Shown: positions 13,501 to 19,500 of the stretch, piece after piece | Numbering within the stretch: position 1 is the first letter of the stretch | How the letters are laid out: every line of letters starts with the position of its first letter | Source of the DNA: Octopus bimaculoides | Taxonomy: Eukaryota | DNA length: 61,476 nucleotides | Assembly: GCF_001194135.2 (NCBI RefSeq) | Contig: NC_068985.1 | Span: 25,078,841 to 25,140,316, forward strand | Direction: 5' to 3' | Translations under genes and position numbers: made by a program | Notes under the pieces: model-generated | Seen by the model: the letters and a program-made list of their open reading frames with translations, nothing else | Database searches by the model: none | Told to the model about the DNA's origin: nothing

Positions 13501-16500
13501 TCTTTTCCCNNNNNNNNNNNNNNNNNNNNNNNNNNNNNNNNNNNNNNNNNNNNNNNNNNNNNNNNNNNNNNNNNNNNNNNNNNNNNNNNNNNNNNNNNNN
13601 NNNNNNNNNNNNNNNNNNNNNNNNNNNNNNNNNTATATATATAAAGATATATATATATATATATAATGTATTTTTGTTTTGTATTCATTCAAAATTGTTT
13701 ATTTCAAACAAATTTTCTTCTTAAAATTTTGTTTCTCAATTGATAATTAATAAGTTTTTGGTTCATAAAATCATAATGGAATTTTTTTGTGTAGCTTGCT
13801 CATGATGTACAGCAGTTTTATTTTTTCCAACACCAAGATAAATAAATATTAAAATTTTTACTTCGACTTTTTTCTCTAAAATTTACAGACCAATGCAATC
13901 CTACAAAAAGTTGACAACGAAATAGTAAGTATATTCCATATTTAGCTATAAAATGCATTAAAGTGGTTAATTTTTTGTTTCCTTTTATATATTTTCCTGT
14001 TAATCTGTGGCTGTACGAGCTTATAGTTAGCTGTATTCTAGATTCATGTTAGTGTACGAGATTCAAATTATAAATACTTTAGAAATATTACAGTAGTCAT
14101 CGTGTTGGTTTATTAAATTGAATTAAAACTCTGTTACGGTAGCATGAGAAACATTGTCTACTCTCTAATAATAATCCAAGGACAATTACAAAAGCATATA
14201 TATATATTACTTTAGTTTCACTTGATTCGTGGAGAGGATTTGAGGCTTGTATTGTAAGGTAATAAATTACTCATCAATTGTAGAACTCTCTCTTGCCAAT
14301 ACATACAGACAAAGAGATCAAGGATAATTGGTCAGACATTGTTATCAAGGACGCTAGGAAAAAGAAATACCTTTTAACTGAAATATTAGTCACAACTGAT
14401 AATAATGTGCTTTTCAAAAGAATTCAAAATTAATCCAATTATTTAGATCGGGAAATGGAGATAACCTGAAAGTAGATGCCGATATCAAATGATTCTGAAA
14501 TTAATAGTTGCCTTGGGAATGTAAGGCTACAGAAGTAAACTTACTCTATGAAATATATATTTACCACTAAGTGATCTGGTATATTCAAAGTTAAACATTT
14601 TGACAAGTAATACTGAGCCAGTGATTTGATATTAACCGTCAATAGATAAGTTGACACACTACTGACAATCAATCATAACTTTTCTTGTCATAGCTGCGTA
14701 GTCGGCAAAGGTATGAGAGTGTGGTTAAGAAGTTTATTTCATAACAATATGGTTTTGGATTTGATCCAACTGCATAGCACTTTGGGAAATGTATCTTCAA
14801 CCATTGTCACAGGACAACCAGGGCATTACAAATGTAATTTGGGAGACAGAAACTGTGGAAACCTGTCAGAGGGGTTGTTTCTGTGCTTGTACCTCAGTTT
14901 AGTACCATGCCTTGAATGCCTTTATCAAAGCCCATCTGTTGAAAGCAGGCCATGATCTAACAGAACTTCGATCAAAAGCATTTCAACTAAGATCACTCCA
15001 TCTTTGTGGGATACATAGAATTATATTATTTACTATGTATGTATATGCATACGTAATTATAGTATTCATTAGAATCTAGGTACAACAGCACATAGGGATA
15101 GGTACAATAATAGTCTTTACAGAGAGATAAAATAACTATGAAGGTATCATGTTGGTAGAATACTGTAGATACCTAAGTACCGAATTCAGTTTAAACCACA
15201 GATCTGACTCAGGGCTGGTTCTAGGTACAGTAGAGGTATTAAAAAGAACATAAAGGAGGTTTTAAATTCATGATAGCTGTTTTGGTAGAATTTTATTGAT
15301 GCTTTCATAAGTTATGTCGTAGCATTTAACTTGCCATCTTCAGGTAAAATTTTAAACAGGTATAAATAAGTTACTTAATAGCTTGATGATGACAACTCTA
15401 ACCAATATTTTTGGATAAGTACATACATTTTGGATGATGATGATGATGATGATGATGATATATATATATATATATATGAATAATAACAATAATCCTAGAA
15501 TCGAATCTATAAACACTTAAGGCATTGCTATGTACGTTTCCGCAAATCACATGTCTCTTAAGATCACAGTCTGTATTCCTGGTATGATTACAGTGTAGTC
15601 CGTAGTATCTGTGGGCATCAGCTAGATCGTCTTCTTGGATTCATTTCTTCAGATGATATAACATTAATGGATGTACTACAGAAAGATGTTTGTCCTTTTT
15701 ACCAGTATGAAGGTTAAGCTTCATTAGATTTGCAGACCTTCTGGCGTACATTGCATTGAAAGGTATTCACAGACATATAAGCAGAATAGTACATACATAC
15801 ATACATACATAAATACATACATACTTACATGTATACATACATGTTTGGGAGTGTATGAGTGATCCTATTGTAAGTTAATAAGGAATCACACCATTGATAT
15901 TCGTGAATTTTAATTTGATTTCTTTTTTGATTTCTAGCCAAGTGACACAAGAGAAAGGATGAAAAGTTTTCTCAAAATGTTACCCCAAAGCTTCATTTTA
16001 AATTCTGATGTTTTGATTAAAAGACAAAATTCAAATAGGTCCTCTAATACTTCGACTCCAAGACGAAATTCAAATAGGCCCATTAGAACTGTGACTCCTT
16101 CAGATGTTTGGGTTACAAGACGAAATTCAAATAGGTCCTCTAATACTTCGACTCCAAGACGAAATTCAAATAGGCCCTTTAGAACTGTGACTCCTTCAGA
16201 TGTTTGGGTTACAAGACGAAATTCAAATAGGTCCCNNNNNNNNNNNNNNNNNNNNNNNNNNNNNNNNNNNNNNNNNNNNNNNNNNNNNNNNNNNNNNNNN
16301 NNNNNNNNNNNNNNNNNNNNNNNNNNNNNNNNNNNNNNNNNNNNNNNNNNNNNNNNNNNNNNNNNNNNNNNNNNNNNNNNNNNNNNNNNNNNNNNNNNNN
16401 NNNNNNNNNNNNNNNNNNNNNNNNNNNNNNNNNNNNNNNNNNNNNNNNNNNNNNNNNNNNNNNNNNNNNNNNNNNNNNNNNNNNNNNNNNNNNNNNNNNN

Positions 16501-19500
16501 NNNNNNNNNNNNNNNNNNNNNNNNNNNNNNNNNNNNNNNNNNNNNNNNNNNNNNNNNNNNNNNNNNNNNNNNNNNNNNNNNNNNNNNNNNNNNNNNNNNN
16601 NNNNNNNNNNNNNNNNNNNNNNNNNNNNNNNNNNNNNNNNNNNNNNNNNNNNNNNNNNNNNNNNNNNNNNNNNNNNNNNNNNNNNNNNNNNNNNNNNNNN
16701 NNNNNNNNNNTTCAAATAGGTCCTCTAATACTTCGACTCCAAGACGAAATTCAAATAGGCCCTTTAGAACTGTGACTCCTTCAGATGTTTGGGTTACAAG
16801 ACGAAATTCAAATAGGTCCTCTAATACTTCGACTCCAAGACGAAATTCAAATAGGCCCTTTAGAACTGTGACTCCTTCAGATGTTTGGGTTACAAGACGA
16901 AATTCAAATAGGTCCCCTAATACTTCAACTCCAAGACGAAATTCAAATAGGCCCTTTAGAACTGTGACTCCTTCAGATGTTTGGGTTACAAGACGAAATT
17001 CAAATAGGCCCTTTAGAACTNNNNNNNNNNCCAAGACGAAATTCAAATAGGCCCTTTAGAACTGTGACTCCTTCAGATGTTTGGGTTACAAGACGAAATT
17101 CAAATAGGCCCTTTAGAACTGTAACTCCAATGAATAAACGAGGAACCCGAAAACCAAAAAAGGATTCCAAAAAGAAATCAAAATGGGAATTGTTAAAGAA
17201 CGTGAGTATTTTTTATCTTGTTCATTTGATTATATTTTCTTTTGAGAAGAGTTTTCCTTCGTTCGTTCGTTTGTTTGTTCGTTCGTTCGTTCGTTCCTAC
17301 CTTCCATCCATCCATCCATCCATCTACCCACTATTGCTGTGAGGGTCATGGAGGTAACATTCACAGGCACCTCCTCCATAAGATCCTATTAGAAGTAACT
17401 AGGATATAGACTCCCTTCAGTCATGGATTACCATAGGATTACACCTAGAAAGTTGCCCCTCCAAGGCACAAATCTGGGAAAAGTTATTTATGGAAGACCA
17501 GCAGTCACCCATGTATACCACCAGCATCCCCTCTCCACACCACTGATGTTATTATCCAAGGGAAAGGCAAGGGTCGATGCAGCTTGGCACCAGTGATGTT
17601 ACAACTCATTTCTACAATTGAGTGAACTGGAGCAATGTGAAATAAAGTGTCTTGCTGAAGAACACAACACACAGCCTACTCCAGGAATTGAACTCACTAC
17701 TTCATGACTGTGAGCCCAACACTCTAGCCACTGAGCCATGCACCTTCTCCAGATTCCCAAGCATGACCAACTGAGATTAAAGATATATCCAACCATCTCA
17801 TTCTTGGCCTACCCATATGTATACTACAGGTTGGCTCAGCTTGAAAAATCCATCTTGCAATTCTTTCTTGTGACATTCTAACCACATGTCCATAGTACTG
17901 GAGCTGTGACTTCTTGATACAGAGAAGTAGCAACTCCACCTAGAAAAATCTCTCTGATCTCTCTGATGTTCTTCTAATTATGGACAAGAGAAAAGATTCA
18001 TACATTCTGTAAGCCAAAGGAAGTTGTTGAATAACTTCTTCATGTCTGTTTCTATCTTTTAGCATGTTCTTTTCATCAATGTGCAGGCATAGCTATGTAA
18101 TTAAGAAGCTTGCTTTGCGACCATGTGATTTCAGGTTCAGTCCTAATACATGGCACTTTGGGCATGTCTTTTGCTATAACCTCAAGCCAACCAATACTTA
18201 GTGAGTGAATTTGGTTGATGGAAACAGTATGAAAAGTATATATACAAATATATATATATATATATATATATATATATANNNNNNNNNNNNNNNNNNNNNN
18301 NNNNNNNNNNNNNNNNNNNNNNNNNNNNNNNNNNNNNNNNNNNNNNNNNNNNNNNNNNNNNNNNNNNNNNNNNNNNNNNNNNNNNNNNNNNNNNNNNNNN
18401 NNNNNNNNNNNNNNNNNNNNNNNNNNNNNATATATATTGCTGTTGTGTTGTTGTTGGCACTCCGTCGCTTCTGACGTCGAGGGTTCCAGTTGATCCGATC
18501 AACGGAACAGCCTGCTCATGAAATTAACGTGCAAGTGGCTGAGCACTCCACAGACACATGTACCCTTAACGTAGTTCTAGGGGATATTCAGCATGACACA
18601 GTATGACAAGGCTGACCCTTTGAATTACAGGCACACACACACACACACACACACACACACACACACACAGATATATATTCAGCAGTATTAGAACAAAATC
18701 GTTATAAGGCATAAATGAACTTTAGGTTAGTTAAAATAAGTTTCCAACATATTTCAGCTTCTAAAGGTAAATTCTCTGCAGCTGCCATGGAGAAAAAGGT
18801 TCTCTCTTATGGTAAAAGGTGTAAAGACAACATATTTGTGTGTATCATTATATTTGTTCTTACTCCTCAGCCTGACAACTAACTTTATTTGTTTACAATC
18901 CCATAACTTAGCAGTCAGCAAAAGAAATGAATAGAATAAAGAGAATATGTACTTGACTTTAAAATGATTACTGTTGTTGACCTATTTGGCTAACCCCTTC
19001 AAGGTAGTGCCCCAGCAGAGACACTGTCCAATGACTAAAGCGTTTATAAATCGAAAGGAACATAAACCAGATCCAACTTTTTTTAGGTGTTTGCTGGCAT
19101 ACCTCTTATCACATTCACTGAAGTGTTAAGACCAGTTCCCTCTGGTGGTGAAAAGCATTCATTGCAGTGCCATGTAAAAGCACCTTGTAAAGTGGTTGGC
19201 ATTAGAAAGAGCATCTAGCCATAGAAACCATGCCAAATCAGACTGGAACCTAGTGCAGCTCTGGTAAACCGTCCAACCCATGCCAGCATGGACAACAGAC
19301 GTTAAATGATGATGATGATGATATAACTACTACTTTGAGAGTGGTTGGCATTAAGGAGGGCATCCAACCATAGAAACAAAAGCAAAATCTGACTGGAACC
19401 TGGTACAGCTCTCTAGCTTACCAGTTCCAGCCAAACCATCTAACTCATGCTGACCTGGAAAATGGGCATTAAATGATGATGATGATATATGTATGTGTGT

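Follow-up and report, generated by a model that had tools for sequence, protein, structure and literature searches.

We analyzed a 61,476-nt stretch of the Octopus bimaculoides genome (assembly GCF_001194135.2, contig NC_068985.1, positions 25,078,841 to 25,140,316 of the forward strand), which we call the window and number from its first nucleotide. The plus strand of the window carries exons of LOC106874393, annotated as an 'uncharacterized protein', and one of these exons (15938..17201 as scaffolded) contains a tandem array of alternating 39-bp and 57-bp units. A preliminary description, made from the DNA letters before any search was run, had proposed a coding higher-order minisatellite within a single spliced exon. 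RNA contigs, raw reads and tandem-repeat calls all bore out this proposal: the array is present in the mature mRNA and lies within one constitutive exon.

Repeat units and the exon that carries them

The repeat exon has the acceptor ag/CCAAGT and the donor AAC/gtgagt, with the slash at the exon boundary, and is in phase 0 at both ends. It opens with a unique 5' part (15938..16021, 28 aa), residues 4-13 of which are predicted to be helical, and closes with a unique lysine-rich 3' part (17130..17201, 24 aa); both parts are kept in the orthologues of O. sinensis and O. vulgaris. Between them, the scaffold presents the array in three pieces. The left contig (16022..16235) reads A0-B0-A-B and then the start of an A unit, where A0 begins with RQNS (with a CAA codon) and B0 is an isoleucine variant. 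A 475-N assembly gap (16236..16710) separates it from the middle contig (16711..17020), which reads (A)-B-A-B-A2-B followed by the first 30 nt of another B; A2 is an A unit with a serine to proline change and a silent TCA. After this come 10 Ns and 33 nt that duplicate 16989-17020 (together 17021..17063). The right end of the array (17064..17129) holds the rest of the B unit and a truncated edge unit, B' (17091-17129, 13 aa).

Tandem Repeats Finder (TRF) called a period of 96 at 16003-16234 (2.4 copies, 95% matches, score of 422) and at 16711-17112 (4.1 copies, 94% matches, score of 677), and it also called a 39-bp sub-period within the array. We parsed the array at its shared head, AGACGAAATTCAAATAGG, and obtained alternating units of 39 bp (A, 13 aa) and 57 bp (B, 19 aa). 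A common head for the two units had been described earlier with a length of 17 nt; the head is indeed shared, and it extends over 18 nt. When A was compared to the first 39 nt of B, 7 positions differed (82% alike), and 18 nt encoding SDVWVT were present in B and absent from A. The internal AB copies, on the other hand, were 100% identical to one another, which is the pattern of a higher-order repeat. Only 6 variant nucleotides were found among the 12 units (576 nt), and most of these were in edge units. A0 had a CGA to CAA change (R to Q), B0 had a TTT to ATT change (F to I), and B' had two silent changes. The single A2 unit carried a TCT to CCT change (S to P) together with a linked silent TCG to TCA change. 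Each AB unit contained two RR pairs and two N-glycosylation sequons (NRS and NTS), both of which lay within A. The units are thus arranged head to tail, fall within the ~10-100 bp range and have high identity by both TRF and the variant count, as is characteristic of a coding minisatellite. We detected no A or B units elsewhere in the window on either strand, and DNA depth indicated only ~5-6 copies of the 96-bp period genome-wide. The array is therefore a single-locus array and not a dispersed satellite.

Transcription, assembly gaps and copy number

Logan RNA contigs from several runs started or stopped exactly at 15938 and 17201, and RNA contigs entered the array from both sides, covering 15938-16056 on the left and running from 17093, 17103 or 17107 to 17201 on the right. 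Reads at 13924 ran on into CCAAGTGACACAAG..., that is, into the sequence from 15938 onward, with an agreement of 1 and zero depth in the intron. At the other end, 46 reads (10 + 22 + 14) passed from 17201 into TTTTTGAGTGATGATG... at 19903, and in raw paired-end RNA-seq of three runs the depth was zero at 17205-17230. The predicted junctions of exon 4 to 5 and exon 5 to 6 were thus recovered as the joints 13924/15938 and 17201/19903. In an RNA contig of run X4 the end of the repeat exon likewise directly preceded exon 19903-20046. No indels were seen anywhere in the array in the raw reads of the three runs. It had been considered that transcripts might skip the repeat via an internal donor near 16020; no use of such a donor was seen, as both RNA contigs and reads passed straight through this position. 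The reading frame was open across the upstream exons, the array and the downstream exons, with phase 0 into and out of the repeat exon. Since 39, 57 and 96 bp are all multiples of 3, the frame is kept for any integer set of units. Transcripts of LOC106874393 were detected in no fewer than 20 RNA runs, which came from 7 or more studies.

As scaffolded, the array is entered in frame 15902+3k and left in frame 15900+3k, and this shift arises only from the 10-N gap at 17021-17030. The 32 nt that precede this gap are repeated just after it. Ten RNA reads from three runs joined 16988 directly to 17032, and the shorter arm of these reads reached up to 72 nt. This 43-nt skip restored the frame, so that no frameshift results from the gap, and the reads showed the order A2-B-B-next unit. 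The 10-N gap is an unmerged contig overlap. An unrelated, transposon-like open reading frame (ORF) on the minus strand contains another 10-N gap (30657-30666), an artefact of the same kind. Here a direct duplication of 38 nt borders the gap, such that 12 aa are read twice. Because duplications flank the gaps at 17021 and 30657, 10-N gaps in this assembly can mark unmerged overlapping contig ends. A third 10-N gap, at 38836, had no flanking duplication.

If the terminal C at 16235 is left out, the flanks of the 475-N gap share an overlap of 13 nt, and we consider this gap to be probably spurious or much too long, with a true length that is probably near zero. Joining the three contigs gave a 732-nt in-frame exon whose translation was identical to residues 188-431 of RefSeq XP_014777596.1 (isoform X1). 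The array of this joined model reads A0 B0 (A B)x3 A2 B B B' and encodes 192 aa. To this model we compared the depth of the sequencing runs. In DNA run X1, the 96-bp repeat contig had a depth of 207.7 as compared to 36.9 and 46.4 for the single-copy flanks (4.5-5.6x), and in DNA run X31 the depth was 67.5 as compared to 11.1 for the flank (6.1x); the joined model predicts a ratio of 4.6x. The effective exon length, computed by hand from RNA depth, was ~766, 814 and 808 nt in three runs, relative to 732 nt in the model and to the ~1,200 nt that the 475-N gap of the scaffold would require. DNA and RNA depth together leave room for 0 to ~1.5 AB units beyond the joined model. From depth, we estimate that the array holds 6-7 AB-equivalents and that the repeat exon is ~732 nt long, or one to two 96-nt units longer; this fits the depth better than the ~11 AB units that had been read from the scaffold. 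It seems decidedly improbable that the scaffold is right, with an array of ~11 AB units (~1.05 kb), and that the joined, RefSeq-like model is a collapse. The 475 nt placed in the gap nearly equal 80 + 4 x 96, the depth ratios of RNA contigs reached ~10x in run X4 and 5-10x in run X5, and short reads cannot resolve such an array, all of which would suit a long array. However, both DNA ratios are well under the ~9x that it needs, and the raw RNA reads gave an effective exon of 766-814 nt.

RefSeq lists seven isoforms, X1-X7 (XP_014777596-603). They are distinguished solely by how many A and B units they have and in what order, and their arrays range from A0-B-B' (45 aa) to 192 aa. The simplest reading of these isoforms is that they are artefacts of aligning transcripts to a gapped repeat, or else alleles of a variable number tandem repeat (VNTR). 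We weighed this reading against regulated alternative splicing within the array, to which we assign little probability. The B unit does offer a donor-like TGG/GTTACA and an acceptor-like ACAAG/ site, an in-register deletion from B to B can be drawn as a GT..AG intron (joint 16211 to 17032), and the wide span of the isoforms would be explained. Yet plain B-to-B adjacency accounts for the same joints, RNA depth in all three raw-read runs fit a fully included array of ~576-670 nt, and collapsed transcript assemblies or VNTR alleles placed on a gapped scaffold would yield exactly such isoforms. The UniProt model A0A0L8GVT4 begins at the methionine immediately after the array. The locus illustrates how a gapped short-read scaffold can misrepresent a coding tandem repeat, here as seven isoforms and a truncated UniProt model, with a 10-N gap that hides an overlap and creates a false frameshift and a 475-N gap that is probably empty.

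Some observations hinted at differences between individuals. Position 16082, the I/F site of B0, was T in 8 of 8 reads of run X33 and in 3 of 16 reads of run X34, a hint that concerns the 5' edge of the array, and at the A2 position around 50% of the reads had the A1 haplotype. Together with the DNA depth ratios, which varied between runs, these reads, none of which spans the array, suggest that individuals may differ at the array. At position 1425, in the upstream coding exon, all 11 reads of run X34 had a G to A change, a probable single-nucleotide polymorphism.

The neighbouring exons all lie on the plus strand. The first coding exon in the window (1368..1597) was supported by RNA contigs of three runs and by 14 junction reads; its ORF enters from upstream of the window, stays open and matches the RefSeq protein. 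It is joined to the coding exon 3962..4081 by the joint 1597 to 3962, which has GT..AG ends, and the joint 4081 to 5022 leads to the coding exon 5022..5100; RNA contigs covered both exons. The sequence past 5100 is the start of a 36-nt coding exon (13889..13924, 12 aa), which is spliced straight to the repeat exon. Downstream, exon 19903..20046 is in frame with the end of the repeat exon, as seen in reads and in the X4 contig. Fifteen reads past 20046 continued with AAAATTATTATTTACAAG..., which leads to the coding exon 22146..22328, and splice-site and ORF prediction agreed with these junction reads.

Several other features of the window were noted. An antisense ORF (15934-17046, minus strand, 370 aa) is open across the array only as a side effect of the absence of stop codons from the repeat in this frame; it was ruled out as coding, given that the splice junctions and the flanking ORFs are on the plus strand. 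Four intronic stretches (2953-3083, 15368-15491, 15740-15863 and 17600-17723) had RNA contig depths of about 10^4-10^5, with partial alignments and reads that ran into unrelated sequence. They look like dispersed expressed repeats, similar to short interspersed nuclear elements, and microsatellites, and not like parts of the gene. A GC-richer ORF of 115 aa (353-700, minus strand; MAAKIRIASDV...LYLEMDEEERL...) at the start of the window resembles part of a mobile element, is possibly Gag-like and is unrelated to the array.

Host protein and orthologues

The host family was identified by searching one exact exon against all representative proteins and then scanning the full-length protein with Pfam. 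The exon used (36078..36233, plus strand, 52 aa) has a W..L..LG.LL.GL repeat motif, and phmmer with this exon against 1.84 billion representative proteins returned 37 hits. One of these was a 2,400-aa protein with 100% identity, LOC106874393 of O. bimaculoides (2,400-2,413 aa), for which isoforms X1-X7 are listed. The relatives among the hits included a Nematostella protein (9e-14), whose cluster has a member named 'Stereocilin LRR domain-containing protein', otoancorin-like proteins (8.6e-11 and 7.8e-8), which come from a crinoid and a hemichordate, and a stereocilin-like protein of a sturgeon (7e-4). The top hit, P0001, was rejected as a relative since it is a low-complexity repeat protein. 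The Pfam domain Stereocilin (PF21058) was found in the octopus protein with an E-value of 1.2e-14 and 54.7 bits, relative to a cut-off of 26.6. Stereocilin and Mesothelin domains were both present in three scanned relatives (P0003, P0005 and P0006); the C-terminal part of the octopus protein was below the Pfam threshold for Mesothelin. Searches for homologues with the exon-5 peptide or with a 682-aa draft of the downstream exons found nothing and also missed the gene's own protein, whereas the RefSeq protein worked as a query. Pfam and PDB sequence searches with hand-picked concatenations of exons gave nothing significant. The PF21058 match and the named homologues support the placement of LOC106874393 in the stereocilin/otoancorin/mesothelin superfamily, as had been proposed. 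The array is already annotated as coding sequence in RefSeq, and we found no paper that mentions the gene; literature searches on the gene and protein accessions, on stereocilin with octopus or Nematostella and on statocyst with otoancorin returned nothing relevant.

The sequence of the LOC106874393 protein has a hydrophobic N-terminal signal and a hydrophobic C-terminal tail of the glycosylphosphatidylinositol (GPI) type. Outside the array it contains 41 N-X-S/T sequons, as compared to 22.8 +/- 4.2 in shuffled sequences. The product is possibly extracellular and may be GPI-anchored. An extracellular member of the mesothelin superfamily fits, because the signal, the hydrophobic tail, an RRRRRR site and the excess of sequons match the features described for the family (PMC2628672). 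In XP_014777596.1, a polybasic KRRRRRRS (RRRKRS in O. sinensis and O. vulgaris) lies at the head of residues ~2093-2413, which are encoded outside the window, and precedes a ~320-aa C-terminal domain with the GPI-like tail, in parallel to the furin cleavage of the MPF/mesothelin precursor. The same protein has an acidic, low-complexity stretch rich in D, N, G and E between GRDKPDIDDKKDG and NTDKRPNP. This stretch is longer in O. sinensis, and it is charged in the opposite sense to the basic array.

We then compared the array with its orthologues, at the protein level only. Relative to the O. bimaculoides protein, O. sinensis LOC115212334, a gene of 137 kb, and its O. vulgaris counterpart had identities of 72% on the N-terminal side of the array and 84% over the 600 aa that follow it. 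At the position of the 192-aa array, both had 48 aa, namely RQNSDRTVAPSDIVVT, RRVSNRSFRTPAPSNPQFAT and RIPGRPLRTITP. These three units were diverged from one another and aligned best to B or B' (scores of 49, 45 and 32), while A scored only 12-23. The glutamine of the first O. bimaculoides unit is common to the orthologues, in which it reads RQNSDR. Around 30 relatives recovered from outside Octopus had no similarity to the array and no comparable basic window rich in S, T, N and P, which was in agreement with the earlier remark that no such insert is known in vertebrate family members. Two further species of the same study were also compared via their RNA contigs; no match was obtained at 80% likeness, a result that is uninformative.

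Because the orthologue units align best to B or B' and not to A, a B-like linker appears to be ancestral. B thus looks like the ancestral form and A is more likely a derived variant that is 18 bp shorter, and the 13-codon (A) ancestor favored in the preliminary description is not supported. The CGA to CAA change, for which TGA was never seen, had also been read as a hint of selection for the ORF. This hint is not supported, since the glutamine is probably an ancestral residue and a test of selection would need more than six variant sites. Recent homogenization, on the other hand, is supported at the protein level by ~12 near-identical units in O. bimaculoides relative to three diverged ones in the orthologues. 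As the orthologues have three diverged B-like units, the A unit, the amplification and the homogenization appear, among the three species compared, to be specific to the O. bimaculoides lineage. We propose that the ancestor would have had a short, basic linker rich in Ser, Thr and Pro, in which three B-like units, diverged from one another, made up 48 aa. A derived A unit would later have arisen beside a B unit in the O. bimaculoides lineage, and the AB pair would then have been amplified and homogenized, presumably via unequal crossing-over or replication slippage. Such a course would leave the less-homogenized units at the edges (A0, B0 and B'), and the A2 variant lies a short way in from the 3' end. 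The present array has about 12 sub-units and at least 576 nt (192 aa), a linker that is ~fourfold longer than in the orthologues.

One further difference between the species lies outside the array. The O. sinensis protein (P0062) has ~110 extra residues (SLLKPNKALSN...MKTMFG) between the exons that match 59990-60126 and 60833-60906. No trace of these residues was found in the window by tblastn (60127-60832), which points to loss of an exon in O. bimaculoides or to a gain in O. sinensis.

Likely role of the array and comparison with known systems

The array encodes a segment with 22% Arg, 15% Asn and 42.7% Ser, Thr and Pro (S 16.7, T 15.6 and P 10.4). It has a net charge of +36, a pI of 12.0 and 10 N-glycan sequons. 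By the Uversky charge-hydropathy criterion the segment falls far on the disordered side. A single-sequence AlphaFold model gave pLDDT (predicted local distance difference test) values of 45-59 for the repeat and no secondary structure; a short helix was predicted only in the unique N-terminal flank. Composition and model together suggest that the array is intrinsically disordered, and its S+T+P content (at least ~40% in a disordered tandem array) is that of a mucin-like spacer of the Pro/Thr/Ser (PTS) type. The array is most likely a flexible, cationic and probably glycosylated spacer, with glycosylation sites that are putative and read from the sequons. Such a spacer would separate a helical segment of ~190 aa at the N terminus from the rest of the helical-repeat protein, and its length and charge would vary under weak constraint on the exact sequence. 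Taken as a whole, the locus is quite likely explained by a lineage-specific, in-frame expansion of a coding minisatellite that forms a disordered, glycosylated spacer in a stereocilin-family protein.

The following points weigh against this explanation. When the O. sinensis orthologue was scanned with Pfam, the Stereocilin domain was not recovered, and the only trace of it there is a faint, precomputed hit. The 475-N gap is not uniquely crossed by any read or contig, continuity and unit number there are judged from depth, and the 475 nt of the scaffolder would hold ~four more AB units. In runs X4, X5 and X14 the RNA contigs gave higher apparent ratios (5-10x and above), although depth is an unreliable measure for such contigs. 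Disorder is read from composition and one single-sequence AlphaFold run. Finally, a neutral expansion without functional consequence is inseparable from a spacer whose length matters.

Members of the stereocilin/otoancorin family anchor acellular gels to sensory epithelia (hair cells) in vertebrates. This raises the possibility that selection acts on the array as a functional module and that it is no passive spacer. In this view, a polycationic, glycosylated stretch would bind polyanions (sulfated glycans or acidic matrix proteins) or template mineral and so tune the attachment of an extracellular gel or statolith matrix to the sensory epithelium. We consider this view unlikely. The charge of +36 and the pI of 12, the acidic D/N/G-rich stretch that we read in the same protein and the maintained ORF would all fit such a module, and the family has been proposed to bind carbohydrate moieties of extracellular glycoproteins (PMC2628672). 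However, the unit sequence is not conserved between Octopus species, and upkeep of the ORF is near-automatic when units are multiples of 3 and copies are young. The transcript, moreover, was found across many RNA runs of 7 or more studies and is not obviously restricted to the statocyst; a statocyst role for the array is unsupported. Still less probable is the stronger form, in which a hypervariable polycationic, glycosylated module, with a copy number that differs between individuals and species, would tune the binding of a stereocilin/otoancorin-type anchor to an acidic gel or mineral matrix on the cephalopod mechanosensory epithelium or, in a variant of this reading, would release bioactive peptides. 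If it were true, the array would be a natural dial of length and charge for a sensory accessory structure.

Release of peptides by proprotein convertases had also been suggested for the repeat. In this scheme the array would be a multi-copy peptide precursor, cut at each RR to yield peptides of the 11-aa and 17-aa type. Every unit is indeed bounded by an RR pair, and the signal peptide suggests entry into the secretory pathway. We did not, however, find a convertase consensus at the unit borders or its conservation in the orthologues. P4 is V or T and the sites are thus not of the furin type (R-X-K/R-R), and R-X-[KR]-R occurs just twice in the protein, in both cases away from the array, as RIKR (762) and as the RRRRRR run (2093). 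In O. sinensis and O. vulgaris, a dibasic pair is present at one of the two internal unit junctions (VVT-RR-VS) and missing from the other (FAT-RI-PG). In addition, the host is a ~2,400-aa helical-repeat protein with a GPI-type tail and not a small prohormone, and no Gly amidation signals are present. The lack of a P4 Arg, the location of the R-X-[KR]-R sites, the unconserved dibasics and the size of the host together make convertase processing unlikely, and we regard a peptide precursor as a highly improbable account of the array.

The array may be a clean and datable example of a disordered linker that grew fourfold in one octopus lineage within a host that is otherwise conserved. Should the protein prove to act in the mechanosensory organs of cephalopods, the array would provide a natural variant with which to study how anchoring depends on linker length and charge.

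Among known systems, the molluscan multi-copy neuropeptide precursors, such as those of the FMRFamide type, share with the octopus protein short units bounded by dibasic sites and a protein of the secretory pathway. They differ in that the octopus host is a giant helical-repeat surface protein without amidation signals, and in that its dibasic sites lack a P4 Arg and are not conserved in the orthologues. The higher-order-repeat concept of alpha-satellite DNA also applies, since sub-units that are 82% alike alternate, AB units are 100% identical and variants lie mostly at the edges; the octopus array, however, is tiny (~0.6 kb), single-locus and protein-coding. The stereocilin/otoancorin/mesothelin superfamily provides the closest parallels for the host. 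The octopus protein has the Stereocilin domain above the Pfam gathering cut-off, and its 52-aa exon recovers proteins of cnidarians, echinoderms, hemichordates and fish that are stereocilin-like or otoancorin-like or carry the Stereocilin Pfam domain (most of them also Mesothelin). An N-terminal signal, a hydrophobic C terminus of the GPI type and many N-glycan sequons are further likenesses, and the polybasic, furin-type site ahead of the ~320-aa C-terminal domain recalls the MPF/mesothelin precursor (PMC2628672). On the other hand, the octopus protein is longer (~2,400 aa), and the relatives recovered from outside Octopus are without a basic tandem array rich in S, T, N and P.

The array itself can be likened to the coding VNTRs in mucin-like stalks, such as the 39-bp (13-aa) macroglycopeptide repeat of GP1BA and the 60-bp repeat of MUC1. 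These are also in-frame units of tens of bp, rich in S, T and P, in extracellular and probably glycosylated spacers, with near-identical copies and fast change of copy number, and the octopus A unit has the same 39 bp and 13 aa as the GP1BA repeat. The octopus array differs from a classical PTS mucin in being strongly cationic (22% Arg) and Asn-rich with N-glycan sequons, and it is a higher-order repeat of two sub-units for which length polymorphism is only suggested. With these differences, we regard the array as an ordinary coding-VNTR expansion, an ordinary kind of protein evolution.

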